Below are positions 28,045 through 62,888 of a stretch of 64,000 bases of DNA, one piece after another. Within the stretch, counting starts at the first letter, position 1. Each line of letters begins with the position of its first letter. The translations under genes were made by a program, and so were the position numbers. This DNA is from Anthoceros angustus (lineage: Eukaryota > Plantae > Anthocerotophyta): contig MU008164.1 of assembly GCA_010909165.1 (NCBI GenBank), forward strand, positions 2,073,595-2,137,594, in the 5' to 3' direction. Below the pieces are notes generated by a model. That model searched no databases, was not told the origin of the DNA, and saw only the letters and a program-made list of their open reading frames with translations.

Positions 28045-28957
28045 ATGGCGGAGGAACGAGAGATGGCGGCTGTAGAGGACGAGGTTATGGTCACAGATGC
28101 AGAAAATGCGAAGAGGAAGAGGGAAGATGAGAGCGGTGTTGCTGAGGAGGAGGGGGGCGATGTGCTGGTCCCCGAGGAAGAGGCCTCTGCTGCTTCCAAG
28201 AAGGTGAAGACTGATGTTGAAGGTGGAAGCATGGAAGCTGGGGCTGCAGACAAAGGGAAGGAAGAGGAAGGGGAAGGTGCGGGCGAAGATGGTGGTACTA
28301 AAACGGTGGCCCTGGGACCGAAGGTGTTCCGGGATCCCGTGGATCTCTTTTCCTATTTCTACAAGTTTATTCATACGTGGCCGGAGAATATCGACGTGAA
28401 CAAGGTGAGGCTGCTTTGCAGGGTCTGCCAGCTGCTGGGGGAAGCTGTCTGTGTGGTGTTCCGGTTCTGAGGGTCGTGTGCTTTTTGCAGTATGAGGCGA
28501 TGGTGATGACGGATCTGCTGCTGAAAGGGCATGCGGATCCTCCAAGCAAAATCGGAGCTGGTGTTGAGACTTTTCAAGTGAGAACACATCCTGATTGGCA
28601 CTCGTTATGCTACTACGTTGTCAGAACGGATGGCTCCGTGGAAGACTTCAGCTATAGAAAGTGCTGTGACCAGATTATGCCGTTGCCTGCAAAGTATGTG
28701 GGGGCTGATGGCAAGATACACATCGACTTGTTGAAGCTTACCGGGGTAGAGAAGCAGCCGAAGAAGCGTCTGGAGCAGCATGGAGGTGGAGGGCGTGGGA
28801 GAGGGGTGGTGGCAGGGGAGGTGGGTTTAACAGGGGTGGGGAGGTGGGTTCAACAGGGGTGGAGGGGTGGGTTCACCAGGGGTGGGGTGGTGGTAGAGGC
28901 GGCCAAAGATTTGGAAGCGGAGGCCGTGGACGCAGAGGTGGCCGTGGTCGGTCGTGA
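28045..28957 (+). CDS. DUF3223/DCL-domain protein (DOMINO1/EMB514-like) with acidic N-terminus and RGG tail, 2 exons
   Basis: LGPKVF...YFYKFIHTWPENIDVNK|YEAMVMTDLLLKGH...KIGAGVETFQVRTHPDWHSLCYYVVRTDGSVEDFSYRKC. The G-rich tail reads GFNRGG...GGRGRRGGRGRS* if homopolymer frameshifts are corrected. Confidence 0.9.
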
Positions 28958-29270
28958 GCAGGGGGAGCTCGATAATGGTGGATCTTTTCAATCTTGACCT
29001 TAGGATCACCAGCATTTGCAATTTTGCAAAGCAGATGTCGGTGGAGGCTTCAGGCGAGAGGACAAAGGGGAGGTTGTCTTTGTGTAGACAGGCAGTCCAT
29101 GTCCTTGTTGTATCCCTGAGATGGATCAACGGGTTCTTAGCCTTTCTTTTAGACGATGACGGGCGCTGTGATGTCATTGAGATTCCCACAGGTTCGTATA
29201 ACGTTGTGCCAATGTTCTCTGCAAATTGCAGGAAGTAGTGGTCAGACGAAGGCATTGAATCCAAGTTTTG

Positions 29271-32200
29271 ACACTAAGTTGAAATTTCATATATCTAAGA
29301 CTCTAGCATTCTGTGCTAAGTTTGTGTCTACTTTCCGAGCTTGGTCTGTCGTAGGTCCTTGTAGTGCTTGAGGAGACGTCTGGGTGCTGGCTGATTTCTG
29401 CGCTTTCAGGAAAGCAGCCACCTCTTCTACAACGCGAACTCTTTCCTCCAGACCTGACAAGGCTGGCTGTGGCTGAGTCGGCTGGTCTTCATGCTCCAAA
29501 CGGGCTTTGGCTTCCAGTTCTTCCAGAGCGACAAGCAGAGAGTATGAGATCCAGGCATCGCTGGCCGCGTATCTGATTTGGGCGAAGCTCAAGCCCTCCA
29601 CAGCCCAATTGCTGCATGATACTGTCTTACTTTTCTTGTAAGGCAGCTCAAGAATGTGGTGGGAGAGTTTGGAGAGTCCCGCCTGACGCATTTCCCTCTG
29701 GTTGAGCAGTTCTGCAGCATACAGGGCCAGGTCTACCTCTCCGCAGCACCTCAACCCGTAGTCTTCAAGCAGCTTCTCAGTATCGCCCTTCACTCCCACC
29801 CCCCCAAGCTTCACCTGTGGGTCAGCCAGCAGCTCCTCAAGTGCAGAAGGAATCCGGTCTATGTAGAGGAGCTGCACCAGAAGACACCTGGAAGCCAGTG
29901 AAAGCTGCAGCAGGGCCACCTTGTTCTCTTCTCCTTTGAATCTGTTAGGGCGCCATTCTACATCCAAGCCGAACAGTTTGTCCTCAGCTGTGCATTTGCC
30001 CAGCCAGTCCTCCACTGCTGCCGCTGTATAGGCCACCCTGACCTGCAAGATCTGCCCGCCAACCTTCACCTCTCTCTCCAAGTACCCTGCATCCACATAC
30101 TCCTGTCCCCAACTCTTATCCTCCAGACACGCGGAGGGAGAGCTCGGGGGGAAGTCAAAGAACCCATCTCCAGACTTAGCCTCCTTCCAACCAGCTGCGT
30201 CAGCCTCCCCCCATCCATCCTCCTGCATCCTCTCCTCAGGTGCTTGCACCTCCCACCCCTTTTCTTCTGCCTTCACCTCCCATGCATCATTCTTCTCTTC
30301 CTGTTTCCCCACCTCAGATGCTTTCCCACCCCTTAGTTCCTCGAACTCCCATGCATTATTCGGGTGTCTGTGCTCAGGTGCTTGCGCCTCCAACCCGGTT
30401 CCGCACTGCCCCTTGAACTCCCATGCATCCTTCCAAACTTCCCCAACTCTGCCTTCCTCCCACTCACTGCTGCTTCTCCCCCCACCCTGAACATGGAACT
30501 CCTGAGCCTCCTCCGTGTAGCCCATTACCTCCCCTTCCCCTTCCTCCTCCTCCTCCTCCTCCTCTTCTGAGAAGCCACCGCAGATGCCTAGATTGCTCGA
30601 CTCCTTCAAGCTCTCTGCTCCAGCCGACTGTGCCCGTGCTGCAGCATGCTCTCCCAGGGAAGTAGAAGCCATTTGCGCTGCTAAGACATCCTGCTCCTGC
30701 TGCAGGACTTCCATGGCACCGCCTCCAGTCCCACTCGTGTGGTAGGTATACCTAGAGCTCCCTCCTAGGGCAGGGCCTCACAGCAACTTTCCTTCTTGAG
30801 ACTCAGGCTGTGCCTACTCCTGTGTGAACATGCTTCTTCCTCTACAGGACCATGGCGTCTGTGCAGCTCGGACATCATTTATATTCGTGTTGCCAGTGGC
30901 TCTACATACTGTTGCAACTGCGCAGGCTACAACCGACAGGTCCGGAAGCCGGAAGCTTGAAGCCCAAGGGGAAGAGGGGTCAGGCAACAGTGACGTCACC
31001 CACCCTGTCAGAGGGGTGTTCAGTCAGCCTCATAAGGCTAGTACATACTTGAAATGAAATTTTGCATGCAAACCGTCGGGAATCATCGTGCGAGCAGCGA
31101 GCTGCTGCCCATCCGTGTCTTGTACAATCGACGCATTATGCGAAACATTAATGAGGTCTCTCTTCAGGCCCGACGTCCAGTGCACATCACCATAATGTGC
31201 ACCCTAGGTACGCAGTAGCTAGCTGACCTGGAGAGGAAATGTCGATGCAGACTACACTGTACATCAGTGAAGCGCAGGCACGCCCTTGGAAGCTCCCAAG
31301 ATCGAAGGTACAGAGCGCTGGACTGGTCACTCCTGGTGGTGTGCACAATTTCCATCAGGTTAAAGGGAGACGTGTTGCGGATGCCTGGAAGTAAGACTGC
31401 GCCTGGATAGGCAAAACCAGCGTTAGCAAGCAAGCCTCGTCCATGGTCAGAAGTTGCTGCAGAGATGAGCTCATCTTTGCAGCAGAGACACGCAACCATA
31501 TGGTAGTTGATTGTCTTCGCTGTGTGTATAATCATGAGACCTAAGCAGAGGCATATCTGCGAAAGAATGTAGGGGTCGCAGGAAAGAGTGTTTTGCGTCC
31601 TAGAGTGTGATGCTAGCTAGGTATAACCACCAAGATGTCTCCTTGGTCTAATACGCATGCCAGATCTAGAAGACCGATGAAGCTCCACCTGCTCATCATA
31701 TGATGAGCGCTGGAACTCATCGGTCCTGAGGCAGGACTTAGCATTCCCCGCCTCGTTGCACTGCCTGACATCATTGGCCCAAACGGGCATTTGCTCCTCC
31801 AGGTTCATCAAATTCTCAGCCAACTGGAGGATTTGGCTTGATTCCCTTCTCAAGGTTGATCCGGAACGAAGCAGGGACCACGGAGGAAGTGGGTTCGGAT
31901 ACAGGCCCGTAACCAGCTCAGTCTTTGAACTTCAACCAAAAAAACCCAGGCTCCACAAACTTCGATCAATCTTCATACTCCAGTGGCCTCTCGAAACCGA
32001 AACAGGCTGGAGCCTCTTCGAGGCTCAAGGTTGTTGAGGTTGCAGCCCGGCAGGCAGGGCGCCGAGATACCTGCTGCTGCAAACTTACACAAACACGTGA
32101 GTGAAGAATTATGCCCAGAATGAGCTCACACAAAGTTCTTCCACCCGTGATAGCATCACTCCGACAGGCAAGACATTTTTGCGCGACACCAAACACATGG

Positions 32201-33050
32201 GTCACGAGCTGTAGCTCGGGCTGCACGATTCTTACCGAATTCGGGTTCAGTATCGCATTCACGCCGGTCGGCTCTCAGAAAAGGCTGAAACAAAACAGCC
32301 GTGAGAAAGCGATCGCGGAGCTGTCAGCGAGATGGCCAATACACGGAAGGAGAGAGAGGTGGAGGCTTACCTCCCTGGTAACCACCATGGCGGAGAAGTG
32401 GGTGACGATGCTGAGCATCTCCCTCAGCGGAATGGACCCGAACTGGTGGAGGAACTCGGCAACGGTCGTCAAAATCTAGACGTCGTCGATCGGGGTCGGG
32501 AAGCCACGAGCTCGAAGCACGCAGGGTTTGGTCCCTGAAATCATCTTCCTCCTCCTCCACCGCGTGCCCGCCTCCTCTCCCGCCTCCTCCGACATTTTCC
32601 CGTCCGCCATGGCAACAGGAAGTCTCCCGAAAAGGAAGGCAGCGCGATGGTTGCCCTCGGCGGGGCTGGAGCGCCGCCGGGGAGGGTAGGACCCGGACTC
32701 AAACTTCTGGTGAAGGTCTGGTCCGAACCGGGTGCGTGGCGCCCAAGCCACCTGCTTTTGTTTGTCCAGCGCTGAGTGAGCTGGCACTCAAACCATTGGC
32801 GGGCAAGAGCACCCCAGTTTGAGGGAACCTGGCAGGTGGGCGGTTCTGTTACGTCTCTCTCTTGCCCGACTGAGTGAGCCGGTACGAGGTCCTGTCCGTT
32901 GATGGCATCCTCAATCCAGGGCCAGGATTGGATAGCATGGGTATCGAGGAGCTGCTTTGCCTCATGACTGCCCCGCCAGGCGGCCAGGTTCGCGCCCCAC
33001 CCATCATACACCCCGGTGTGGGAAATGAAACAAACAACGCAGGCTGATGA
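29271..33050. repeat. Segmental duplication, copy 1 (partner 35921-39072)
   Basis: Colinear similarity from acactaagttgaaatttca to gtgtgggaaatgaaa...gcaggc, covering the exonuclease gene and ~2 kb upstream. Copy 1 has ~400 bp extra at ~31447-31847. Confidence 0.92.
29287..30714 (-). CDS. WRN/WEX-like DEDDy 3'-5' exonuclease, copy A (475 aa, intronless), acidic Trp-rich N-terminus
   Basis: ExoI GLDVEWRP, KVALLQL, ExoII GVGVKGDTEKL, SNW, ExoIII QIRYAASDAW. Confidence 0.93.
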   Translation of the reverse strand: MEVLQQEQDVLAAQMASTSLGEHAAARAQSAGAESLKESSNLGICGGFSEEEEEEEEEGEGEVMGYTEEAQEFHVQGGGRSSSEWEEGRVGEVWKDAWEFKGQCGTGLEAQAPEHRHPNNAWEFEELRGGKASEVGKQEEKNDAWEVKAEEKGWEVQAPEERMQEDGWGEADAAGWKEAKSGDGFFDFPPSSPSACLEDKSWGQEYVDAGYLEREVKVGGQILQVRVAYTAAAVEDWLGKCTAEDKLFGLDVEWRPNRFKGEENKVALLQLSLASRCLLVQLLYIDRIPSALEELLADPQVKLGGVGVKGDTEKLLEDYGLRCCGEVDLALYAAELLNQREMRQAGLSKLSHHILELPYKKSKTVSCSNWAVEGLSFAQIRYAASDAWISYSLLVALEELEAKARLEHEDQPTQPQPALSGLEERVRVVEEVAAFLKAQKSASTQTSPQALQGPTTDQARKVDTNLAQNARVLDI

Positions 33051-34770
33051 GATTGAGAGGGACGCGCACCTTCTCATCCTATCTCAAGTGGGATAATCTT
33101 GTTTTGTTACAAATATTGGATAAGATATGTAGGTTATCTTTATCATCTATGAAAACATTACAAGGTGAATGGATTAAAAAATCCTAGTCATTCTTTTAAT
33201 CCTAAAAAATCTTAAGCTAGAGATGGTAGGTATGTCATAAAGACCATTGAGTGTGGAGGGTTGGAAAATACCAATAGTGGGTGTTTTCATAATTCTACGA
33301 AAAGTTAACAAAGGAGGGTTAGAAAATACGGGTTGTCTTCACACAATCATATGTAGACAAATATGTTGAGCGAGTTAAAGAATACATTTCATTCTCACAA
33401 TCATGTGAAGAGATGAAAGGGTCAGGATGAAGACGGTTGAAGTCGGAAATGAAGATAGTCAGGGTTGAAAATGCACATGGTAGGGTTAGAGAATATTGGT
33501 TATCTTCACAATCATGTGAAGACCCTTATTGTGAACTATGTACCGGGCATCTTCCATTCTCGGTGGGAGGGCCAGGAACTATGTTCTGCCATATGAGGGC
33601 AACGCACTATGTACCGGCCATTTTCCATTCTCAAAAAGTTCGTTTGGTTTGGAGAATATGAGTCAACAAGTTATGAATAGCATGGCAAATGCTAGAGGTT
33701 TAGAAAGTAATTACTCTTTTTACGATATAGTGAAACTGAAAAGTTCAATAAAAAATAAAGTCTTATAAAATTATAAAATCTCAAAATCTTATAAAATTAT
33801 CATACCTTCAAATGTAAGTCATGTTTTGAAACTTAACAGTCACATTTTTTGGAACTTATATAGTTATATGAGTAGAAAATATGATATATGGTATGCATAT
33901 TGACATATCCACAACTAAAGTTTCTTATTTAAGAGCATTGGGAACCTAGCTATTATTAGTTTTTTATTACTTAAAATGATAACCAATGCTAGTTGTATAC
34001 AAATGTTGATATTAGGATTCGAATAAATGGGAGCACAACCTTAATATGTTGCCTTAGACCAACTAGGTCTTGTCAATATAACTCATCTTGCGAAAGAATA
34101 TAGGGGTTGCGGGAAAGAGTGTTTTGCGTCGTAGAGTGTGATGCTAGCCCTATAGGTATAACCACCAAGATCTTTCCTTGGTCTAGTACGCATGCCCGAT
34201 CTAGAAGACTGATGAAGCTCCACTTGCTCATCAATCTTACACCAACTAGGCTATGTCTACTTAACTCAACCTTAATCTAGTGCCTTAGACCAATTAGGTG
34301 AACACAAAGGCGTCGCTTATCTCAATTTACTTAAAGAATGAAACCAAATTGTATATAAAAAGCAAAGAACTAAACCTTCCAAACTACCAAGGGACTTTCA
34401 ATGAACTTATGTATATCAAAGTAGACATGTATGAACACTAAGAGCTTTGTGGTAGGCCATAGGCCAGCTCAATTTGAAGGAAGCCGCCTGGTTCTTTTGA
34501 GCCTCAACAAAACCTAAAAGCTCACGGAGGCAGCGCTCGTCAATCAACCTTCATTTTTCATGCCTTGTCAATTTAAGTTCGTATGCCTATCAAAATTTGC
34601 GTGATAGATGAACAAGACCGAGGCACTAATCTTTCAACTCACAACTTCCACATCATATTTCACTTACTTCGGATCATGGCACACTACAATCAGTGTTTTT
34701 GCTCCAGTTTTGATAGCAATCTAACCTGCACTACCGTGCCATCTTACATGTCCGATATTTGCACCTGATC

Positions 34771-35655
34771 AAGAAGATATATGTTGGTCATGAAGGTGCT
34801 AGCAGCATCACGGGAGAAATGAACAAGATATATGTTGGTCATGAAGGTGCTAGCAAAGTCACGGGAGAAATGAACAAGATATATGTTGGTCATGAAGGTG
34901 CTAGCAGCATCATGGGAGAAATGAACAACTACTGGGCCAGTACTCCTGATAATGATTTCCACATCCACATACATGAGATTTAACAAAAGATCAGCAGAAT
35001 GCCACATTTAAATTTAGGTTAGGTTACCAGGTGAGCCTCCTGATAATGAGCTCCACATCCACATATATGAGAACAAGAGATCAACAGAATACCACATTCA
35101 AATTTAGGTTAGGTTACCAGGTGAACCGCCAAGGCCATGCGACCCTTCAATCCATCACCGAGGCACCGCCAAAGCCATGCGACCCTTCAATCCATCACTG
35201 AGGCACCGCCAAAGCCATACGACACTTCAATCCATCACTGAGGCACCGCCAAAGCCATGCGACCCTTCAATCCATCACCGAGGCACCGCCAAAGCCATGC
35301 GACCCTTCAATCCATCACTGAGGCACCGCCAAAGCCATGCGACCCTTCAATCTATCACTGAGGGATGGGGGATTAGTATTGAATGAAATTCGGGGATTAG
35401 TATTCAATGAAATGCCTACCATTGCTTTCAAGCCATCGCTAGAAAGCACATATTGACAACTTCAAGTAGGTGGACCAATGTGGAGAGGATTGCAAGATAA
35501 ATTCCTATGCAAATGCAAGTAGGTGGACCAATGTGGAGAGGATTGCAAGACGAATTTCTATGCAAATGCAAGTAGGTGGACCTATGTGAAGAGGATTGCA
35601 AGACGAATTCCTATGCAAATGCAAGTAGGTGGACCTATGTGGAGAGGATTGAAAG
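34771..35655. repeat. Cluster of unrelated minisatellites: 51 bp x3 (34771-34928), ~92 bp x2 (34945-35123), 40 bp x6 (35125-35362), 53 bp x~4 (35463-35652)
   Basis: Units read directly, e.g. caccgccaaagccatgcgacccttcaatccatcactgagg (40 bp) and caagtaggtggaccaatgtggagaggattgcaagacgaattcctatgcaaatg (53 bp). Confidence 0.92.
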
Positions 35656-35920
35656 CCAGGGAATGGTAGCAAAAGCTAATTAAACAAGAACCCTCTAGTG
35701 GTGGGTATTGAGGTGAAGAAGAAGGTACATACATTTGTGATGGGAGAAAATTGAAGTAAGCAATATTTTTACAAATTTTAGTAAATAATATTTTTATTTT
35801 TTAATATTTTATTGTAACAGAAAACGTTCTCAATCAAACAAAGGGGATAAGCCCAAAAACACCAAGACTTTGGAGCTCCCCCAGGACATAACGGGGAGAT
35901 ATTTTAGACTACGTCCTTCG

Positions 35921-38900
35921 ACACCAAGTTGAAATTTCATTTGTCTATGGCACTGGCGTTCTGTGCTAATTTTGTGTCAACTGTCCGAGCTTGGTCTGTC
36001 CTAGGTCCTTGTTGTGCTTGAGGAGACGTGTGGGTGCTGGCTGCTCTCTGTTTCAGGAAAGCAACCACATCTTGTATATCACGAATTCGTCCCTCCAGAC
36101 CTGACCAGGCTGGCTGTGGCTGAGTCGGCTGGTCTTTATGCTCCAAACCGGCTTTGGCTTCCAGATCTTGCAGAGCGACCAGCAGCGAGTATGAAATCCA
36201 GGCATCGCAGGCTGCGAATCTGATTTGGGTGAAGCTCAAGCCCTCCACAGCCCAATCGCTGCATGATATTGTCTTCCTTTTCTTGTATGGCAGGTCAAGG
36301 ATGTATTGGGAGAGCTTGGAGAGTCCCGCCTGACGCATCTCCCTCTGGTTGAGCAGTTCTGCAGCATACAGGGCCAGGTCTACCTCTCCGCAGCACCTCA
36401 ACCCGTAGTCTTCAAGCAGCTTCTCAGCATCGCCCTTCACTCCCACCCCCCCAAGCTTCACCTGTGGGTCAGCCAGCAGCTCCTCAAGTGCAGAAGGAAT
36501 CCGGTCTATGTGGAGGAGCTGCACCAGAAGACATCTGGAAGCCAGTGAAAGCTGCAGCAGGGCCACCTTGTTCTCATCCCCTCTGAACCTGTTAGGGCGC
36601 CATTGTACATCGAAGCCAAACAGTTTGTCCTTAGCTGTGCATTTATCAAGCCAGTCCTCCACTGCTGCCGCTGTATGTGCCACCCTGACCTGCAGGATCT
36701 GCCCGCCAACCTCCACCGCTCTTTCCAAGTACCCCACATCCACACACTTCTCTCCCCAACTCGTTATACCCTCCAGACAAGCGGAGGGAGAGCCCGGGGG
36801 GAAGGCAAAGAACCCATCTTCAGACTTAGCCTCCTTCCAACCAGCTGCCTCAGCCTCCCCCTCCGCATCCTTCCTCTCCCCAGATGCTTGCACCTCCCAC
36901 CCCTTTTCTCCTGCCTTCACCTCCGATGCATCATTCTTCGAATTCGCTGCCTCGAGCTCTTTCCCCTCCTCAGGTGCTTGCCCACCCTTCCAAACTTCCC
37001 CAACCCTCCCTTCCTCCCACCCACTGCAGCTTCTCTCCCCACCCTGAACATGGAACTCCTGAGCCTCCTCCGTGAAGCCCACTACCTCCCCTTCCTCCTC
37101 CTCTGAGAAGCCACCGCAGATGCCTGATTTGCTCGAATCTTTCAAGCTCTTTGCTCCAGCCGACTGTGCCTGTGCTGCAGCGTGCTCTTCCAGGGAAGTA
37201 GAAGCCTTTTTTGCTGCAAAGACCGAGTCCTCCGGATCCTCCTGCAGGACATCCATGGCACCGCCTCCAGCGCCACTAGTCTCGCGATGTGGTAGGTAAA
37301 CCTAGAGCTCCCTCCTAGAGCAAAACACCGGTCCTCGCAGCAACTTTCCTTCTATAGACTCAATTGCGGTGCCGACTCCTGTGTGAACATGCTTCGAATT
37401 CTTCCTCTGCAGGACCATGGTGTATGTGCAGCTCGACCATCATTTATATTCGTCGTGGCCAGTGGCCTACACACTGTAGCAGCTGCGCAGGACCGACAGG
37501 TCTGGAAGCTGGAATCCGAAGGCGAAGCGGGTTCAGGCAACAGTGACGTCACCCACCTTGTCAGAGGGGTGTTCAGACAGGCCTCATCTGGCTGGCCATG
37601 GTACTCGGAATCTTGCATGCAAGCCGTCAGGAATCATCGTGCGAGCAGCGAGCTACTGCCTATACGTGTCTTGTGTCTTGTACAATCGAAGCATCATGAG
37701 AAACATCGATCAATGAGGTCTCTCTTGAGGCCCGACGTCCAGTGCGCATCACGATAATATGCACACCAGGTGGCAGGTACGCTGTAGCAAGCTGGTCTGG
37801 AGAGGAAATACATATCGATGCCGACTACATCAATGAACAGCAGGCACACGCCCTTGGAAGCTTCCAAGATCGAAGGAGGTGCAGAGCGCTGGACTGGCCA
37901 CTCCTGGTCTTCAGCTCGTGCACACTTTCAAGGAGTAGGATTATCGGGGACATGCGTTTCGAATGCTTGGAACTAGACTGCGCCTGTACAGGCAAAGAAG
38001 CAGCTGACAAGACGTGGAAGGCCTCCATGTTTTCAAGGTTGATCCGGAAACGTGCACAGGTTCAATCTTGAGTAACCAGCTCAGTCTCCTTACAGATATC
38101 GGTCTTGAACTTCATCAAAAAACAAACCTCCAAAACTTCGATATCAACCAAAACAGCCAGCAGCCTCCTCGAGCTCGAGGCTCAGGGTTGGTGTGGTTGT
38201 AACCCCGGCAAGCAGGGCGGCGAGATACCTGCTGCTACAGACTCCCACCAAAACGTTAAGAATGCCCAGAATGCGTTCACACAAAGTTCTGCCACCCGTG
38301 CCAAAACGAAACACAGGCTGAAACAAATTTACAGCCATGAGCTTAGCTCGGAACTTCAGAGAAAGCGATCGAGAACACTTGCAAAACAGTCAGCAGCGAG
38401 GTGCAATACAAAAAAGGAGAGAGAGGTGGAGGCTTGCCTTCCTGGAAACCGCAATGGCAGAGAAGTGGGTGACGATGCGATGCTGAGCTTCTCCCTCAGC
38501 GGAATGGACCCGAACCGGTGGAGGAACTCCGCAAAGATCATCAAAATTTCCACGTCGTCGATCTGGAAGCCTATAGCTCGAAGCACGCAGAACGTGGTCC
38601 TTGGAATTCTCCTCCTCCGCTGCTCTACCGCCTCTCTGGCCTCCTCCGACATCTTCCCGTCCGGAAGCCTCCGGAAACCGGAAGGGAACGAGATGGTTGC
38701 CCGTTGCCCCGGGCGGCCCCGGGACCCTGGACCACCGCCGGGGAGGGTAGGACCCGGACCCCCGCTTCGGGCAGAGGCCCGGTCCGAACCGGGTGGCCTT
38801 CCCCCAAGCCACCCGGGTTTTTCAAGTGGTGAGTGAGCTGGCACTCAAAGCTTAGAGGAGCCCTGAATGCGGCTCTGTTACGTTTCCTCTTGCTCAATTG

Positions 38901-39072
38901 AGGGAGACGGTACGTCCTGTCCGTTGATGGCATCCTGAATCCAGGGCCAGGATTGGATGGCAGGGGTATCGAGGAGCTACTTTACCTTGTCACTGCCACG
39001 TCAGTTTTGCATATGGCTTTATCCTTCCGACACCAAGTGTGGGAAATGAAATAAACAATGCAGGCCGTGAGA
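35921..39072. repeat. Segmental duplication, copy 2
   Basis: Colinear with 29271-33050. Confidence 0.92.
35937..37256 (-). CDS. WRN/WEX-like exonuclease, copy B (439 aa, intact ORF, catalytic residues substituted)
   Basis: Close paralog of copy A; ExoI GFDVQWRP (E->Q), ExoIII QIRFAACDAW (Y->F). Confidence 0.92.
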   Translation of the reverse strand: MDVLQEDPEDSVFAAKKASTSLEEHAAAQAQSAGAKSLKDSSKSGICGGFSEEEEGEVVGFTEEAQEFHVQGGERSCSGWEEGRVGEVWKGGQAPEEGKELEAANSKNDASEVKAGEKGWEVQASGERKDAEGEAEAAGWKEAKSEDGFFAFPPGSPSACLEGITSWGEKCVDVGYLERAVEVGGQILQVRVAHTAAAVEDWLDKCTAKDKLFGFDVQWRPNRFRGDENKVALLQLSLASRCLLVQLLHIDRIPSALEELLADPQVKLGGVGVKGDAEKLLEDYGLRCCGEVDLALYAAELLNQREMRQAGLSKLSQYILDLPYKKRKTISCSDWAVEGLSFTQIRFAACDAWISYSLLVALQDLEAKAGLEHKDQPTQPQPAWSGLEGRIRDIQDVVAFLKQRAASTHTSPQAQQGPRTDQARTVDTKLAQNASAIDK

Positions 39073-41532: not shown

Positions 41533-43554
41533 CAAAGTCTCTCATTAACCTCTTATCCTACAAGTCTAGGTTTGTTTTACGCTCTCGTGGTTTGATAGTC
41601 CTTGAAATCATCCTTGAAATCATAATATGATGAGTAGTTCTTTATGTAAAGTGTACAAATTGGATGGTCTCATCTACACTAAAGTATTGGGGTCTCTAAT
41701 TGCGCTTGCCTTGCAATATTGGGCACCTTGATAAAGATTTCGATGCCGCGAAACTAGATATACGAATGGCTCCTTTTGATGAAGGTTTGAATGCCATGTA
41801 CAAACATTTAGAGTTTTTAGGGCTTGCTATGATTTTGGTGTGCAAACTTGTTTGCACACCAACCTTTCACTCGTATCAGTCAATCCTAAGACTATACTGC
41901 TACAACCGTATGAGAGGGACTTTGGAGATTGGACGTTTTTCATCGCTGAGATACTTGTACATATATAGGAGACGGGGACAGGCCAAGAAGGCGGTGTCCC
42001 TCGTCCAACAACCTTGGTTGTTGCTCTTAACTGTCCGTTAAAGCTAAAGCTATCTCCTACACTACCTATTTACCCCCGTCTATTTACTTGGTAATCTAGG
42101 TATTATTACAATATTATTCAATAATGATTCATCTAGCACTTATCTTTCACCGGCTATAAGTCACATTATAAAATCACTCAAGGTACCTTCTGGATCGGTT
42201 CCATTGTCTCGTCGGCTATGGTGGAGGCGACCGTTCGGTAGCTTCACACGCGACCGGCCATCGTTGCGTGTGGATTCTTCCCACTTAGGATGGCGGGTCC
42301 TCTGGCTCGGTGCTGGGGCTCGGGAAGGCTCATTTGAGCCCGTAAGTGAAGGCGGTGCAAAATCTTTGGGGTTCCCTAAGCAAGATTCTGTCGAGGCCAC
42401 AACACCATAATATTCATCTGATGGAATAAGCGAGGAAGCTTTTCAATGAATATCTTGGTAGGTGGGAACATGGGAACGAAATGCCTGTTCCTGCCATTTT
42501 CCACAAAAAATGTTTCAAAAGTACGATTGCTTTGTGTGCAGGAAGCCGGGAACATGGCATGAGTTGGGCTGGAAAAGGGAGATACAACCTCGGTAGGCAT
42601 ACATTTGCCTTGAAATAATGCCCATACATGACACTCTGTTGGTGGCAGCGAAGAGGGCACGAGAGAGGCCTCTTGCTATACATTCAGTACATGAAGGGTA
42701 TATGATTTTGGAAAAACTGTTTTAAGGAGGGTGTAATAACTATTGGAGATGACAATGGAAATTCAACACGCACCAGTGCGAGTCCCTGTTTCCATCTTCC
42801 CGAAATCATGCAATGCAATTGCCGTTTGCATGCCTCTGGTGTGTGTTTTGTACTTGTCAGTCCACCTTCTTCATGGATTAGTGCTATAAAAGAGAAAGCA
42901 GTTGGCAAGGCGACAAAGTCTCTCTCGACTAACCTCTTATCCTACAAGTCTAGGTTTGTTTTACGCTCGTAGTTTGATAGTCCTTGAAATCATCCTTGAA
43001 ATCATAATATGATGAGTAGTTCTTTATGTAAAGTGTACAAATTGGATGGTCTCATCTACACTAAAGTATTGGGGTCTCCTAATTGCCTTGCAATATTGGG
43101 CACCTTGATAAAGATTTGGTCTTGAAACTAGATATCTGAATGGCTCCTTTTGATGAGGTTTGAATGCCATGTACAAACATTTAGAGTTTTAGGGCTTGCT
43201 ATGATTTTGGTGTGTGCAAACTTGTTTGCACCAACCTTTCACTGCAGTCAATCCTAAGACTATACTGCTACAACCGTATGAGAGGGACTTTGGAGATTGG
43301 ACGTTTTTCATCGTTGAGATACTTGTACATATATAGGAGACGGGGACAGGCCAAGAAGGCGGTGTCCCTCGTCCAACAACCTTGGTTGTTGCTCTTAACT
43401 GTTCGTTAAAGCTAAAGCTATCTCCTACACTACCTATTTACCCCCGTCTATTTACTTGGTAATCTAGGTATTATTACAATATTATTCAATAATGATTCAT
43501 CTAGCACTTATCTTTCACCTATAAGTCACATTATAAAATCACTCAAGGTACCTT
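41533..43554. repeat. ~650-bp direct repeats (41533-42189 and 42914-43554); partial third copy 41017-41117
   Basis: caaagtctctc...ataaaatcactcaaggtacctt present twice; near-identical ORF-track translations at 41700 and 43212. Confidence 0.93.
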
Positions 43555-45030
43555 GGAGAACTAGTGGACGCATGAACTCGAAATTCCCGACAAACGCGTT
43601 CAAACATATGAGGAGTGAAATGTGCGGGGAGGTATAAGCGGTGGAGGCGCGGCATGCGCCTCCATTTATATCTTCTACAAACGATAGAAACAAGTGACTT
43701 ACCTTGAGAACTAGGGACGCATGGTCAAATGCCGTCCCGCCGACAAGCGTTCAAACATGAGGAGTGAAATGTGGCGGTGTAAATAGTGGAGGCAGGCATG
43801 CGCGCCTCCTTATTCTCCTTCTACAACCAGTGAAACAAGTGACTTACCTTGAGAACTAGGGGATACATGGACTGCGAAATGCGTCCCATCGACAAGCGTT
43901 CAAACATATGAGGTGAAGGCTTGTAGGAGTGTAAGCGGTGGAGGCGGCATGCGGCGCCTCCACTTGTTACTGCTACAAACTAGAAACAAGTGACTTACCT
44001 TGGGCGAGAAATAGGCATGGACCCGCGAATGCAGTCCCATCGACAACGCGTTCACATATGAGGAGTGAATGTAGGGCGGTGTAAGCGGTGGAGGCGCGGC
44101 ATGCGGTGCCTCACTGTTACCCCTATAAACGGTAGAAACAAGGACTTACCGTGGGCGGAACTAGGGACATATGGACTCGCGAAATGCCGTCCCATCCGAC
44201 AAACGCTCAAACATATGAGGAGTGAAATGTGCGGGGAGGTATAAGCGGTGGGCGCGGCATGCGGCGCCTCCTTGCTATATCTTCTACAGTAGAAACAAGT
44301 GACTTACCTTGGAGAACTCGTGACGCATGGTCCGAAATGCCGTCCCGACAAGCGTTCAAACATATGAGTGGTAGTGGGCGGTGTAAATAGTGGAGGCATG
44401 CGCCTCCCTGTTACACCTTCTACAGTAGAAACAAGTGACTTACCTTGGAAAGAACTAGGGACATGGACCCATGAAATGCGTCCCATCGACAAGCGTTCAA
44501 ACATATGAGGTGAGCTGTAGGGCGGTGTATTGTCGGTGGAGGCGGCATGCCGGCGCCTCCACTATCTACAAGCAGTGAAACAAGTGACTTACCTTGAGAA
44601 CTAGGGGACACATGGACCCAAATGCCATCCCCGACAAGCGTTCAAACATATGAGGAGTGAATGTAGGGCGGTGTAAGCGGTGGAGGCGGCATGCGGCGCC
44701 TCCTTGTTTCCCTACAACGTAGAAACAAGTGACTTACCTTGGACAGAACTAGGGACATATGGACCCAAATGCCATCCCATCCGACAAACGCTCAACATAT
44801 GAGGAGTGAATGTAGGGCGGTGTAAATAGTGGAGGCGCCGCATGCCGGCGCCCACCGCTTACACGCTACAAACGGTAGAAACAAGGGACTTACCTTGGAC
44901 AGAACTAGGGGACACATGGACCTGCGAAATGCCGTCCCATCTGACAAACGTTCAAACATATCAGGACTGAACTCTCCGGGCTAGGGTATTGTCAATGGTG
45001 GCGCCAGCATGCCGGCGCCTCCACTATACA
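43549..45030. repeat. ~149-bp satellite, about 10 units, each with a GC-rich hairpin
   Basis: Anchor gaaacaagtgacttaccttg recurs every ~135-158 bp; internal palindrome gtggaggcg-gcatgc-cgcctccac. Confidence 0.95.
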
Positions 45031-46792: not shown

Positions 46793-48310
46793 AATTTTGA
46801 GGGTGTGAAATTTGGAGTTTGACGATGGAAAACCGTGCTTTGTCATGTTTTCAAAACTTTGGCCAAAAACTTAAGTGTGAAAGTCCGAAGTGAAGAATGC
46901 AACCATGTTTTTTAGGGTTTTCCCTGTTATGGTTTTTTTTTAGGGTAACACAATCCTCTAATTACCCACCACAAAATGGTTACATTCGAAGATGGAAACC
47001 ATATGTAACAAGCCATGTAGTCATATGGACATCATGAATTTCAAAATGACGACATAAACGGTTTGAAGGGTTGCATGTATGAACGGTTAACAAAAAATGG
47101 TGGATGCCGCATCACTGTAATTCTATGACCGTGGACATCCGGTGAACGCGGCTTCTTCAGTGAACTTCGACTCCAACACAAGTCAAGTGTTGGGATGCCC
47201 TGGATAGTGCCTCGCAACATGGCAGTCATATCTATGTTGCGAAACATGACATGAAAGCCTGGAGGCCGTGCGGCCTGCATTCTCCTGCGTGCTCTCGAAA
47301 GTCCCCCTATAGGCACCAACGTTTGGATGTGTTCAACGTCATTTCGAACCTCACGCTAGCAGGCATAATCCATGCCCATTGGCCTAACCTCATGGCTACA
47401 ATGTTACGCATCGTGACCCTTGGTATGACATATCCATGAATAGGCGATGGTTATGTCATTGGACATGCTCAATGCTTGATGCGTATAGCCATTAGGTAGC
47501 GACGGTCTTTCTTTGGTAGTTTATGCGCCATGATGACAATACGGAATGTGGTAGGAGTTTGATCGGCAATTTTGAGTGTGAAATTTGGGTTTGTGATGGA
47601 AAACCGTGCTTTGTCATGTTTTCAAAACTTTGGCCAAAAACTTAAGTGTGAAAGTCCAGTGAAGAATGCAACCATGTTTTTAGGGTTTTCCTGTTATGGT
47701 TTTAGGGTAATCCTCTAATTACCCACCACAAAATGGTTACATTCGAAGATGGAAACCATATGTAACAAACCATGTAGTCATATGGACATCATGAATTTCA
47801 AAATAGCGACATAAGCGGTTTGAAGGGTTGCATGTATGAGCGGTTAACAAAATGGTGGATGCCGCATCATAATTCTATGACCGTGGATATCCGGTGAGCG
47901 GCTTCATCGAACTTGACTCCAACACAAGTCAAGTGTTGGGTTGCCACGGATAGTGGCGATCATATCTATGTTGCGAAACATGATATGAAATACGGAGGCC
48001 GTGCGGCTTGCATTCTGCGTGCTCTCGAAAGTCCCCACGAGGCACCAGCGTTTGGATGTGTTGAGCGTCATTTCGAACCTCACGCTAGCAGGCATGCCCA
48101 TTGGCCTAACCTCATCGGCTACAATGTTACGCATCGTGGCCAGGCGGTACGGTATGACATATCCATGGTCAAGCGGTGGTTATGTCATTGGACATGCTCA
48201 ATGCTTCAGTGCGTATAGCCATTAGGTAGCAGCCAGTGCTGCTGGTAGTTTGTAAACGCCATGATGACAATACGCGGAATGTGGTAGGAGTTTTACAGTC
48301 GGCAATTTTC
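46793..48310. repeat. Tandem duplication, ~775-bp unit (46793-47567, 47568-48310)
   Basis: aattttgag..gtgtgaaatttgg...gtggtaggagttt..tcggcaatttt repeated; copies differ by many small indels. Confidence 0.93.
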
Positions 48311-50520: not shown

Positions 50521-50639
50521 GATTTGCCGGGCGACTGCTAAGTCTCCCAATCCGGCTTATCAAGACACTTGCGCCTGTAATACACATTTGCATGCGCAGA
50601 AGAATGGCTCATCATCAAGCTTCAAAGCTTGCGGGGAAG

Positions 50640-52443
50640 GCGGCGCTGTAAAGGGCCCTCGGTGTTTGCATGCGGCTCAGAGAGGCTACCGCCCTCGCCG
50701 GATTGATGAGCATTGTTCACACCTAAGTTTGCCAATCCAGAGAGGAGTTTTTCACTATATTGGAGAAGGCTTTTCCATTTAAAACCCCGGAGAAGATAGC
50801 TGAACTGCCGCTTCCAACGGAAGGTGAGGAGACAAGGTAATGGCATTTCGTCGGTTGCAAAAGCTCAGAGATAGAATGCAGTATGTTGGTCGATCAAGAG
50901 GCTAAAAGTTTCTAAATGCTCTTGAGGCAGACCATTGTTTCATTTTATCAACGCTCACCACCAACCACCCGTTGCCGGACAACCGAAAGGGCTCTAAACA
51001 ATGAACAACGCTTTGACTATGAGAGTTACAACAAAAGATAATAAAATGCGACGAACGCCGACGCTGATCCGCATGTAATTGCAATCTCAGAATACTCAGC
51101 AATTCTTGCGCCGCTAGTAAGTTCGCCCACTAGTAGCAAATTGCCATACCTCCACCTTCCACCGAGAAGCCAAAATGCAAAGACTTCGCTTCCCAGCTGA
51201 AGTAGTTGTGAGAGTAGAGGTTCGAGCTCGCTAAATGCATCAGCATCCGCTCAAAGTGAGTGGAGAGTTCCCTAGTCCACAAAAAACATGCATCAGCAAC
51301 GTGCAAAATGTAGGCTCTTGCTCACTCGCTCGTGCAACATATTGTTCCAACAGAATTGAATTGCACAGAAAAGAGTGACAATCGTGAGCTGTGCTCATCC
51401 ACTATCACGACCACGCTTTTGTAGCTACGATTCTCTGGCCCACTCCGGCTACCAACAGGGACCTCTTAAGCTCGTCCTGTCTCATCGGTCTCCATCTCGT
51501 GCACCGCTGATTTCCTCCCGCCCGCCATCACTCCTCGATAGCCTTGTTTCATCATCAAGCTCGGTTGCGGCGAGGCGGCGGGTAAAGGGCCCTCGGTGTT
51601 TGCATGCGGCTCAGAGAGGGCCCGCCGGATTGATGAGCATATTGTTGTACCTAAGTTTGCCAATCCTGTAGAGGAGTTTTTCACTATATTGGAGAAGGCT
51701 TTTCCATTTAAAACCCCGGAGAAGATAGCTGAACTATGGCTTCGGAAGAAGGAGAGCGATTAAATGGCATTTTAGTCGGTTGCAAAAGCTCAGAGATAGA
51801 ACTGGTATGTTGAGTGATCAAGAGGCAGCACAAAGTTTCATTTGCTCTTGAGGCAGACCATTGTTTCATTTTCAGATGTTTATCAACGCTTCTCACGATA
51901 TGTTGCCAGACAACGAAGGGTCGAACAATGAACAACGTTTGACTATGAGAGTTACAACAAAAGAGATAACAAAATCGTAGAGAGCGACCATTGATGCATG
52001 TAATTGCGGATGCACAATTCTTGCGCTAGTAAGTTAAGCACTAGTAGCAGGTGCCATACCTCCACCTTCAGAAGCCAAAATGCAAAGACTTCCTTCAGAG
52101 TAGTTGTGAGAGTAGAGGTTCGCTAAATCATCGACATCCGCTCAAAGTGGTGGAGAGTTCCCTAGTCCACAAAACATGCCATCGACAGCGTGCAAAATGT
52201 AGGCTCTTGCTCACTCGCTCGTGCAACATATTGTTCCAAAATTGGTGCCTGGAAAAGACAATCGTGGTATTGTGCTCATCACTATCGACCACGCTTTTGT
52301 AGCTGAGACTCTCTGGTGACTCCTGGCTACCAACACAGGACCTCTTAAGCTCGTCCTCGTCTCATCGGTCTCCATCTCGTGCCAGCTGCCTGATTTCCTC
52401 CCGCTCCCGCCATCACTCCTCGATAGCCTTGTTCGCATCATCA
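50640..52443. repeat. Tandem duplication, ~930-bp unit (50640-51573, 51574-52443)
   Basis: ggcggcg..gtaaagggccctcggtgtttgcatgcggctcagagagg begins both copies; both end gatagccttgtt..catcatca. Confidence 0.93.
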
Positions 52444-59015: not shown

Positions 59016-60104
59016 CTAGCCTAAGGACTGGATAGGAAGAGTTTTCTTTGCAAGACTTAGGTAGAGTGCCATATGCCTATGACCAACACGACCCTTGTAT
59101 GTATGTATGGAAATCTCTCTCGACCCTTGTATGTATGTATGGAAATCCAGAGAGATTTGAAGCGAGACCAGCACAAACCGAGCAGAAAAGCGTTCAAAGG
59201 GCATGATGAAAGTGAAAAGCCTTCCGACTGATGAACCGCAAAGCTCCTCCAGTTGTTAGAATATTGTATCTAGACAAATATAATATAAGCCATATCATCA
59301 CATAAAATTTATAATGTATATAGGAATAACATACAAAATATATGCTCAAGATACACTATGCTCATAAGTAGTTTATAACACACATACACCTTCAATGGCA
59401 TCCCGATCTTTTCTGGGACTTTTCGAGGTTGTGTTAAGTTTAAACTCCTACACACCCTTCCTACACATGACATGACTCGACGGGCCTTCCACCCTTGTAC
59501 CGATGTCGTCACAAGCTGATACATTATTATTTCCGTGATACATAGAAGTTTCTCTTAGGGCTAGGGTTGAGTTGCATGATGCATGAAAGGGAAGGAGGCG
59601 TTACGGTCACCAAGTCCCAAGACTGTGCATGCAACCATGATGGTTTCTGAGGCCCTCAAACTGAAATCTGAATTCTTTGTTGAAATCACTAAATCTGCCG
59701 ATTCAAGGCATGCTCGCAACATATTCGGACCACATTCTGACAAACACTCCTCCCTTGTGGTGCACAGGGAAATACTCACCTTGCTCTCGGTGTGTGCTAC
59801 ACACTTTGAAAGAAATGCTCACATTCGCCGCCTCAATAGTTGTTGTAGCCAACGAGCTAGCAATATCAATAGACATAAGCACATTCAGACGCACGAGATA
59901 TATGATTCAAACCACGGATAACACCATTTAAAGCACCTTACACGATGTAAACGATTCTTTGCTACATGGCCTCCTTCCTTCTCGTCCCGCTTCCGCGTTT
60001 GTGAAAGATGGATGCATCAACATCACCAACGAGGATATGTCACACACAACGCGATCGCATTTGCTTGCAATCTACAATAGTAGCCTCCACAACCCGCAGA
60101 GCAT

Positions 60105-61020
60105 TGCCCTTGCCGCGCCGCTTGCCGCGCCTTGCCGCGCCTGCCCGCGCCTGCCCGCGCCCTTGCCGCGCCCTTGCCGCGCCCTTGCCGCGCCCTTGCC
60201 GCGCCCTTGCCCGCCCTTGCCCGCGCCCTTGCCCGCCCCCGCGCCTGCCCGCGCCCTTACCCGCGCCCACGCGCCCTTACCGCGCCCTGCGCCGCCTGCC
60301 TGCCCGCCCTTACCCGCGCCCACCCCGCGCCTGCCGCGCCACCCGCGCCTGCCCGCGCCGCCACCCGCGCCCTTACCGCGCCACCGCGCCCTTACCGCGC
60401 CTGCCGCGCCTTACCGCGCCCGCCGCGCCTTACCCGCGCCCTTGCCGCGCCTGCCACCCGCGCCCCGCCCCGCGCCCGCCGCCCTTGCCCGCCGCCGCCG
60501 CGCCCTTGCCGCGCCTTGCCGCGCCTGCCGCGCCCGCGCCCGCCGCGCCGCCGCTGCCGCGCCTGCCGCGCCACCCACCGCGCCACCGCGCCACCCGCGC
60601 CCCCGCGCGCCCGCCGCGCCTGCCGCGCCTTACCCGCGCCTGCCCGCGCCCCCACCGCGCCCTTGCCCGCCTTGCCCACCCGCGCCTTACCGCGCCCACC
60701 CACCGCGCCTTACCCGCGCGCCTTGCCCGCCGCCTGCCCGCGCCCTGCCCGCGCCTGCCCGCGCCCTGCCCGCCGCCTTGCCGCGCCTGCCGCGCCTGCC
60801 CGCGCCCTGCCCGCGCCCTGCCGCGCCCTTGCCCGCGCCTTGCGCGCCTTGCCCGCGCCTGCCCGCGCCCACACCGCGCCACCCGCGCCCTTGCGCGCCC
60901 GCCCGCGCCACCCGCGCGCCCTTTCCCGCGCCTTTCGCGCCCTTTCCCGCGCCTGCCGCGCGCCGCTGCCCTTGCGCCTTGCCTTGCCCGCGCCCTGCCC
61001 GCCCGCCCTTGCCGCCTTGT
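60105..61020. repeat. GC-rich strand-asymmetric minisatellite (ccgcgc core with cttg/ctta/ctg/ca linkers)
   Basis: About 910 bp of gccgcgccctt / gcccgcgcct variants; explains the overlapping Pro/Ala/Arg and Gly/Arg ORFs. Confidence 0.95.
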
Positions 61021-61231
61021 CCACAGACCACCAAGACCGCCTGTCTCCTCCACACCACCAGTTCCCCCAAACCTGCGGTGTAGGCATCTCCGTCGTCAGG
61101 ACCGCTAGACCGCACTCGGAGCGAGTCCGGTTGTGCTCGGACCCAATCGGGACTCTTAGGCCCCTGTCCGAGTAGGTCGTCCAACTCTTTGGTCCGTTTC
61201 ACGGTCACATTCCTTCTCCGCTCTCCTTCGC

Positions 61232-61591
61232 TTAGAGTCCGGTGGGGGTGAAGGGGTCCGGGAGCAAGCTCTTCCTCTCCCCTATGAGGAGAGAGGACTG
61301 GCTCCGGGTGAAAACTGCCAATGGCCTTGGGCAGCGTAACTTTTCGTCCTCCTCAAACTTTTCGAGCAGGACGGCCTTGCTCGCCGCCGCCAACATCTTT
61401 CGAGCGTACTCCCAAACCAACGCCACGGTCTCGTAGGACCACACCGCCTGGAAAATGTCCAAGTGCCACTTCTGCACGAGCTCGCCCGCTTCGACAAGCC
61501 ATGGGCCGAAATCGGGGTAGCGTCTGGTCACTATGTTCCGCTCCACCAGGCACCAGGGCTCCAAGACCTCCACTGCTTTCTTGGGCCCCAT
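61232..61591 (-). other. Unknown ORF, probably a retroelement accessory protein (MGPKK...)
   Basis: 119-aa ORF homologous by eye to the frameshifted ORF starting at 62889 on the + strand. Confidence 0.45.
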
Positions 61592-62888
61592 GTGTGCTCG
61601 CTGCTTGTTCTGATGCTAAGGTAGGGTGGGCTGCGATGCTCTTCACTGCGCTCTTGAACCCCGGAGAAATTGACGCCGGGAGCAAGGTCACGGCATTGCG
61701 CCAACCTCAAGAGAAAGCGCCAAAGAGCGGGTGCCTAAGCGCGAGGACCGAGAACTACCGAGAAGTCGTTCGAGAAGATGACCTTCTCTCGAGCGTCGGG
61801 TATAATCGGCGCTGGAAGGTGTCCTTCACGCTAGTAATGCCGAGTCCAAGATCGTACGTGCGCGCGACTTTCGCCGACGGCGCCGGCGCGCACAATCCGT
61901 GTCGTTGTAGGAAGGAGTCCGTCAAGGGAATGTGTGGTGACCACATGGTACTCGCAATTTAAAGGAGTGTTTTTTTTTTTGTGTTTAAGTTAGAATCGTG
62001 TGGAGTGGGAATGAAGTAGGTTAGGAATAAAGAAAAGTCTACTAGAGCCTAGTAGGAGGAAGAGGGTCTAGTCCACGATCTGACGGAACCACGGAGGGTT
62101 GGCTGCCGGGGTTGCTAACGCGGTTGCTAGGGGCCGTTGCTTCGAGGCTGTTGCTATGACAAGCCAGGCTGAAGTGCTATGGTAGCAACCAAGTTGGAGT
62201 TTCTTTCCAATGACTTGAAAATCCAATCGGATGGAATTACAAGGGAATACCCAAAGCGGGAGTAAGGGGTCCTATTGGCAATTAAAACGATGGCGGGAAG
62301 AGGATTTGCGAATCCAGCGGATTGAAGACGGCGCGCGCCTCAAGCTCGGAGCGTAATTGTGGGAGGCGGGCGAGCGCCGAGGAAGGACACAAGGGCGGTG
62401 GCACAGTGTCGCGCATCAGTAGACAGCTGCAGGGAGGACCAATCGAGGATTGGTGGGTCCGGAGGATGCGGCGTGGGAGGTGGGCGGTTCAGTCTTCTGG
62501 TGCCAAGAAGTTGGGAAGAGCACGGTGGGTTGGATAGGGCCAGTGTAAGTGGTAGGGCTGTCGCAAAATTGGTGGAAAAGCGGGGTGGTGGTGGCACGAT
62601 CTGGAAGCATTCGAGGAATGTCTGGAAAACATAGGGATTCTTATAACCAGGAAGCGGGAGCATGGTCAACGCCACAAGGGTGGGCATCGAGTAGCTGGAA
62701 CAGAAACGAGGGCTCGGAATAATCGGCGCGGTCACGGGCGGATAGGGGTGAGGCGTGCACCGAGGTCTTGTTTAACCGTGATTGCGATTCCAGCCAGTAA
62801 AATCAGCAGACACTCACCGCCCGTGGTAGGCCAGTGTTCCCAGGATCCTCCATCTTGCGGTCGAGGCTAAGGTGAATTTGGGACGAGC

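Follow-up and report, generated by a model that had tools for sequence, protein, structure and literature searches.

The window analysed here is a 64,000-nucleotide stretch of nuclear DNA, part of contig MU008164.1 of Anthoceros angustus (Anthocerotophyta; assembly GCA_010909165.1), and its main subject is a tandem pair of intronless genes, referred to below as copy A and copy B, whose predicted products are homologous to the PF01612 exonucleases. Copy A encodes a complete set of catalytic residues, whereas copy B carries substitutions at two of the five positions. The two genes and the two divergent codons are the following (positions are those of the window).

29287-30714, reverse strand: copy A, an intronless open reading frame (ORF) of 475 amino acids
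35937-37256, reverse strand: copy B, an intronless, uninterrupted ORF of 439 amino acids
36603-36605, reverse strand: codon 218 of copy B, CAA (Gln), at the ExoI glutamate position; GAA in copy A (29956-29958)
36216-36218, reverse strand: codon 347 of copy B, TTC (Phe), at the ExoIII tyrosine position; TAC in copy A (29569-29571)

Both predicted proteins matched PF01612 well above the cut-off of 23.6 bits (71 bits, 1.4e-19, for A; 62.3 bits, 6.4e-17, for B). Identity between them is 72% overall and 88% over the 195-residue nuclease core; an earlier note on this DNA had called the core nearly identical, a generous wording given that 24 of the 195 residues differ. Copy A comprises an acidic, Trp-rich N-terminal tail (residues 1-205), a WRN-exonuclease-type DEDDy domain (about residues 206-400) and a C-terminal tail with a predicted helix. 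The closest solved structure by sequence is the human WRN exonuclease domain (2fbt, 1e-19), with mouse WRN and EXD2 also among the best matches. An AlphaFold model of residues 171-439 of copy B gave a mean predicted local distance difference test (pLDDT) value of 82.9, with the core mostly above 90. The best fold matches of this model were WRN exonuclease structures (2fbv, 2fbt and 2e6l; template modelling score by target 0.78-0.82, E 4e-15 to 6e-14, root-mean-square deviation 2.2-2.5 Å, 31% identity), followed by EXD2 and then by RICE1 and Nibbler. The WRN-exonuclease-type fold is thus found in the model made of B, to which A is 88% identical in the core.

Among the relatives retrieved, the closest named proteins come from liverworts (Calypogeia, Marchantia and Riccia), the closest overall is a sequence from a Logan assembly (P0004, run SRR33208241), and one relative is from a lycophyte. 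Arabidopsis WEX was absent from the hit lists of these searches and the sole 'WEX' label is the NCBI name of a Capsicum relative of about 40% identity, so that 'WEX-like' denotes a resemblance. An acidic Trp-rich N-terminal tail is present throughout the family (30100-30714 in A, 36747-37256 in B, and relatives P0001-P0010), with three to nine Trp residues per tail, often as GW or WG, and one S/A-G-W motif (W176 in A) is invariant in 12 of 12 sequences. Judged from its sequence, copy A is an ordinary WRN-exonuclease-like or WEX-like member of PF01612 with an unusual W-rich acidic tail.

Catalytic positions were set by alignment to human WRN exonuclease (2fbt) through its D-M-E-W, G-V-G-I-E-G-D and Y-A-A-T-D-A motifs. 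Copy A holds the full set, with D251 and E253 in ExoI (D-M-E-W), D311 in ExoII (G-V-G-I-E-G-D), and Y382 and D386 in ExoIII (Y-A-A-T-D-A). In copy B the corresponding residues are D216, Q218, D276, F347 and D351, that is D-Q-D-F-D against the D-E-D-Y-D of A, and the three catalytic Asp codons are GAT in both copies. The alignment and the codons therefore bear out what the earlier note had read at this locus, namely a complete DEDDy site in A and, in B, an uninterrupted 439-residue ORF with GAA changed to CAA and TAC to TTC. RNA editing was considered as a means of rescuing B and rejected: in plants it converts C to U or U to C in organelle transcripts, and it cannot turn CAA into GAA or TTC into TAC. 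Copy B is a PF01612 homologue whose site, as encoded, departs from the catalytic consensus, and on this ground it would not be counted as a catalytic member of the family.

The two residues replaced in B are conserved among its relatives. Nine liverwort-type relatives and one from a lycophyte make up the bryophyte and lycophyte set; all ten keep both E and Y, and no relative retrieved shows Q or F at these sites. In the wider set of 21 relatives E is kept in 19, Y in 18 and the full D-E-D-Y-D in 18. Conservation reaches 80% or more among these 21 relatives, with agreement in A, at 54 core columns, and B differs at two of these, both catalytic (one-sided Fisher p=0.007): two of the five catalytic residues are replaced and all 49 non-catalytic conserved columns are kept, while A shows no change at any family-conserved column. 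When the threshold was raised to 90% or 100%, degenerate Capsicum paralogues interrupted conservation in the E and Y columns and the test lost power. A 17-sequence alignment, which omitted P0017, P0018 and P0021-P0023 (the 21-relative test took in all), gave a probability of 0.07-0.013 under neutrality for the absence of any hit on its 15 non-catalytic invariant sites.

The reading frame of copy B is free of pseudogene lesions, with no premature stop, frameshift or lost start. All eight indels that separate the two coding sequences are multiples of three, compared with 3 of 15 in the homologous 604 bp upstream, where inspection of the alignment showed the indels to be well flanked. If indels that are not multiples of three had struck the 1320 nt of B at their upstream density, about 13 frameshifts would be expected on the B branch under neutrality, and none is seen. 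By simulation, the probability of encountering no stop codon, as in B, is 0.01-0.04 at 0.062-0.075 neutral substitutions per site, and about four stops are expected over the whole B branch under neutrality. The replacements derived in B are also conservative, with a mean BLOSUM62 score of +0.50 compared with -0.52 for random single-nucleotide replacements (p=0.036). By our own arithmetic, the expected numbers of frameshifts and stops are compatible with an intact B (P>=0.05) only if any neutral phase has lasted less than about 18% of the time since duplication.

Self-comparison of the window placed the two genes in a tandem duplication of about 3.7 kb, with unit A running from 29267 to about 33050 and unit B from 35917 to about 39050. 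The parts of the units outside the coding sequences, and the putative regulatory elements within and beside them, are the following.

30715-33050, reverse strand: upstream half of duplication unit A, from self-comparison
37257-39050, reverse strand: upstream half of duplication unit B, homologous to 30715-33050
29263-29286, reverse strand (35913-35936 in B): last stretch of A/B homology, about 24 nt past the stop codon; the 3' flanks beyond it are unrelated
33051-35916, no strand: spacer between units A and B, about 2.9 kb, without counterpart in the other copy
30873-30888, reverse strand: TATA-type block ACGAATATAAATGATG, about 160-175 nt before the ATG of A; identical block before B at 37438-37453
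30980-31004, reverse strand: 25-nt block containing the palindrome TGACGTCA; identical block before B at 37533-37557
35793-35813, reverse strand: two AATAAA hexamers, 124 and 139 nt after the stop codon of B, in AT-rich DNA

Nucleotide identity reaches 90.7% between 29267-30295 and 35917-36939, and 86% over the proximal 620 bp or so before the two ATGs. Further upstream, unit A contains an insertion of about 0.5 kb (roughly 31340-31900) that unit B does not have. Both the TATA-type block and the block with TGACGTCA, presumably an ACGT-core bZIP-type site, are identical in A and B; the former has only these two matches in the window, with 0 expected by chance. The ATG of B stands in the context GCCATGG, the same as in A. 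ORFs of the duplicated upstream segment gave no Pfam match, and the unit therefore shows no sign of a second gene; Rfam gave no match at the A/B locus. The Calypogeia fissa orthologue and P0004 are single-exon genes too. No further copy lies within 10 kb of the Calypogeia gene, and the duplication is therefore specific to the present lineage.

Divergence between the two copies is not uniform along the coding sequence, and one segment stands out.

29692-29928, reverse strand (36339-36575 in B): low-divergence tract, codons 263-341 of A, with 3 differences in 237 nt

This tract lies between the two catalytic substitutions and includes the ExoII Asp. Synonymous divergence (dS) is 0.044 over codons 262-352, which include the tract, as against 0.21-0.29 in the flanking core, and the longest identical runs between A and B are longer than permutation predicts (p=0.015 for all sites, 0.013 for third positions). 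The tract is probably the product of gene conversion. Both catalytic changes sit in the flanking segments, which look older by their dS of 0.21-0.29, and outside the probable conversion tract two of four catalytic columns are changed in B compared with none of 21 non-catalytic ones (p=0.02). The distal duplicated part (32000-33050 against 38100-39050) is about 76% identical, with many indels, compared with 86% in the proximal promoter and 90% in the coding sequence; conversion confined to the gene end is one option for this gradient.

Based on these observations, we hold with moderate confidence that copy B is a paralogue of recent origin that is translated and constrained in its fold but has had its catalysis disabled. 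The gene family, found in bryophytes, encodes an acidic Trp-rich tail followed by a WRN-exonuclease-type DEDDy 3'-5' exonuclease domain, and its intronless gene would have been doubled by a tandem duplication of about 3.7 kb that is specific to this lineage and dates back about 0.12 in synonymous divergence. Copy A would be a conventional enzyme. Copy B would still be a protein-coding gene, having kept its frame, its promoter motifs, its predicted fold and every non-catalytic conserved residue, with Gln in place of the metal-binding Glu of ExoI and Phe in place of the water-orienting Tyr of ExoIII. Its product would then fold like the enzyme and hold a nucleic-acid 3' end in the pocket, hydrolysing it poorly or not at all, and B may act as a non-cutting binder, possibly a competitor of A for the same substrates or partners. 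Any such role would be young and maybe unstable, because constraint on B is relaxed about four-fold.

Several results weigh against this reading, and the first concern substitution rates. The pairwise ratio of nonsynonymous to synonymous divergence (dN/dS) between A and B is 0.76 overall and 0.40 in the core, with a dS of 0.124, and it rises to about 1.1-1.2 in both tails. Branch ratios (omega) were estimated with our own implementation of a GY94-type codon model (F3x4, equal branch times for A and B; not PAML) on four taxa, A, B, P0004 and P0001. They reached 0.58 for B (profile interval about 0.26-1.25), 0.30 for A and 0.14 for the background. The value for B is about four-fold higher than the background (p=0.003) and is not distinguishable from 1 (p=0.15) or from that of A (p=0.25). 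A version of the model with free A and B branch lengths was dropped; because the outgroups are saturated at synonymous sites, it was not identifiable and branch length was traded against omega. A relative-rate count in the core gave 10 replacements derived in B and 4 in A, a non-significant difference (p=0.18). Taken by themselves, the substitution rates indicate relaxation on B and settle nothing further.

Other points on the same side come from the conserved sites, the gene ends and the searches. Within the bryophyte and lycophyte set, B alone has changed Y229, K260 and N369, and A none of them; these positions vary in the wider family, WRN carrying Arg in place of K260 and the lycophyte protein Asp in place of N369. 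The N-terminal tail of B has five Trp motifs compared with nine in A, four having been lost in B, and the difference arises from a 33-residue indel and two Trp replacements. Because the A/B homology ends about 24 nt past the stop codon, one copy has a replaced 3' end, and judged by position in the array that copy is probably B, for which the AATAAA pair provides candidate poly(A) signals. Word searches with residues 200-475 of A and the 195-residue core of B returned no B-type orthologue or closer relative above about 61% identity in the collections searched, and neither exact-sequence look-up nor word search found a transcript or protein record for A or B. Repeated conversion from A could have helped to keep the frame of B open without selection on B itself. 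Finally, the p-values for the catalytic hits and the open frame are inflated by ascertainment, because the locus was picked for those very features.

Most of these points would fit a recent death of the gene, in which B remained functional as a second enzyme through most of the period after duplication and was lately inactivated, neutral decay having just started, too early for stops or frameshifts to appear. On this account the omega of B, four times the family background and compatible with 1, would be expected, as would the fact that, at sites conserved throughout the bryophyte and lycophyte set of ten, the changes (five in all) are confined to B, together with its loss of N-terminal W motifs and of the shared 3' flank. 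Loss of catalytic residues in lineage-specific Capsicum paralogues further suggests that such loss is a common fate in the family. Inactivation followed by the onset of decay is a live alternative, since an omega of 1 is not rejected and no B orthologue or transcript was found in the searched collections. We nevertheless judge it somewhat unlikely: the expected 13 or so frameshifts and four or so stops leave room for a neutral phase only under the 18% limit given above, and two of the few substitutions must both have struck the five catalytic residues and none the 49 other conserved ones. On sequence grounds, the hits on conserved sites in B do not appear random, though an omega of 1 is not rejected. 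The view of the earlier note that B is not decaying at random is supported by the frame, the stops, the conserved residues, the conservative replacements and the promoter motifs; the omega of 0.58, which does not differ from 1, and the probable gene conversion weigh on the other side. The supported conclusion is that B does not look like a freely drifting pseudogene.

Within the reading of B as a preserved but catalytically disabled protein, a more specific sub-case is that B is actively kept by selection as a decoy or regulator that binds RNA and partners A, for example in an A-B heterodimer formed through the C-terminal helix. The evidence for a preserved fold (frame, stops and conserved columns) applies here as well, and a precedent exists in EXD1 of the animal piwi-interacting RNA (piRNA) pathway, an inactive DEDD-fold domain that serves as a single-stranded RNA-binding module and dimerises through a C-terminal hook (PMC4712191). 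A helix is predicted at residues 387-407 of B and a V-[AV]-A-F-L-K motif is common to A, B and their nearest relative, P0004; co-expression of the two copies is plausible because their promoter blocks are identical. However, the helix has low model confidence (pLDDT 52-68), and the C-terminal tail has an omega of about 1.1, with six changes derived in B compared with one in A, and we consider maintenance of B as a partner of A unlikely.

The strongest version of this idea would make B a selected 'anti-enzyme', occupying the same 3' ends as A (perhaps those of Argonaute-bound small RNAs, given the W-rich tail) or the same partner, and so tuning the trimming carried out by A. Such a protein would have been born by tandem duplication and kept beside A under the same promoter logic. 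We regard this proposal as decidedly unlikely; if true, a bryophyte-grade plant would offer a case in which a pseudo-nuclease regulator arose very recently and at a datable point.

A different possibility is that B is still an enzyme. Gln may still act as a weak metal ligand, and activity is often only partly impaired when the Tyr hydroxyl is lost, so that B could be a slow or retuned exonuclease, using another metal or another substrate. The three Asp and all the other conserved pocket residues are kept, and no milder change was open to either codon. A Tyr-to-Phe change in the exonuclease site of Klenow costs far less activity than loss of a carboxylate. Yet the site affected by both changes is intact in 18 of the 21 relatives, and the fact that a single active site was struck twice suggests that catalysis is no longer under selection. 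Moreover, E84A, the standard exonuclease-dead mutant of WRN, removes the Glu at the equivalent position and abolishes activity (PMC13377182), though by replacement with Ala and not with Gln. Residual or altered catalysis by B accordingly seems improbable to us. An artefact, whether sequencing or assembly errors at the two codons or a collapsed or chimeric assembly of alleles, is hardly credible: B is a separate locus by its 122 differences from A over 1296 aligned coding positions, its eight indels, its own diverged upstream region and its unrelated 3' flank, and two errors falling exactly on catalytic codons would be very unlikely.

The surroundings of the two genes show several further features. 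An ORF with a DUF3223 domain (PF11523, 2.8e-21) lies at 28377-28997 on the forward strand, convergent with copy A; about 290 bp separate the two stop codons, and the 3' untranslated region of A must therefore be short or overlap its neighbour. The spacer contains, immediately downstream of copy B, a cluster of four minisatellite arrays (34774-35655) with periods of 51, 90, 40 and 53 nt, present in 2-6 copies with 88-95% matches. An element of about 145 bp, probably a transposon fragment or a small dispersed repeat, occurs twice with 90% identity, at 31555-31698, inside the 0.5-kb insertion of unit A, and at 34085-34233, in the spacer. Farther away, a tRNA-Met (CAT) gene at 18262-18333 on the forward strand, detected by both ARAGORN and Rfam, is the sole RNA-family match in the window. 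Other large tandem duplications are located at 13104-15129 (97%), 41533-43554 (94%), 43549-45019, 46793-48309 and 50609-52443. A GC-rich block at 60106-61024 (about 70% GC in the 60001-62000 bin) contains many overlapping internal repeats of 75-83% identity.

Returning to the reading of B as a fold-constrained paralogue with disabled catalysis, its significance follows from whether B is expressed. If B is expressed and functional, the pair would capture an early stage of the transition from an enzyme to a dead domain, with two isosteric changes and the rest of the pocket held, and B would provide a natural 'exo-dead' control for the bryophyte W-tailed exonuclease family. If it is unexpressed, B would be an ordinary young duplicate on its way out.

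Compared with known systems, the two proteins most resemble WRN exonuclease and plant WEX. WRN exonuclease gave the best match in both sequence and fold within PF01612, A has the full D-E-D-Y-D set, and, like plant WEX, A and B are stand-alone exonuclease proteins without a RecQ helicase. They differ in carrying an acidic, W-rich N-terminal tail of 170-205 residues and a C-terminal tail, and B differs further by the absence of two catalytic residues. RICE1 (At3g11770; PDB 5v5f) and Nibbler are also DEDDy proteins of the same fold, found among the lower matches of the B model (ranks 21, 24 and 32), but with only 17-19% identity. Both act on small-RNA 3' ends together with Argonaute complexes, and by analogy the W-rich tail of the A/B family invites an Argonaute or small-RNA context.

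Within the family itself, three Capsicum paralogues have replaced catalytic residues (P0018, DKDYD; P0021, DEDTD; P0022, DKDMD), and two of them have aberrant C-termini. Like B, they are lineage-specific extra copies, here within the Solanaceae. The replacements in B are isosteric and leave the rest of the domain untouched; those in the Capsicum copies, with Lys in place of Glu and Thr or Met in place of Tyr, are radical and, with the aberrant C-termini, fit decay. Judging from these sequences, catalytic loss is a recurrent event in expansions of this exonuclease family.

Catalytically dead relatives of enzymes are common. By its sequence and predicted fold, B combines lost catalytic residues with a retained fold, as dead DEDD-fold domains do. 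EXD1 shares with B the loss of catalytic residues and serves as a model for what B may be; however, EXD1 has lost all four acidic residues (SDLN/AELE), is conserved as an inactive domain across animals, and has an Lsm domain and a proven C-terminal dimerisation hook, whereas B has lost two of five residues and is a young copy in a single lineage and a putative nucleic-acid binder. Exuperantia and Egalitarian, which act in Drosophila mRNA localisation, use exonuclease-like domains for RNA binding and not for cleavage (bioRxiv 10.1101/2025.08.03.668247). Egalitarian differs from B in keeping all the DEDDy residues, and Exuperantia in the early date at which its site was lost. The two are long-established, conserved adaptors that carry additional domains, and neither is paired in tandem with an active paralogue. 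B fits the known kind of dead DEDD-fold domain as a candidate, EXD1 being defined by its conservation and its binding, and the interest of B lies in its youth and depends wholly on its expression. Dead DEDD-fold RNA adaptors such as EXD1 and Exuperantia are ancient and their origin is no longer visible, whereas here the presumed active parent and its disabled copy adjoin at about 12% synonymous divergence.

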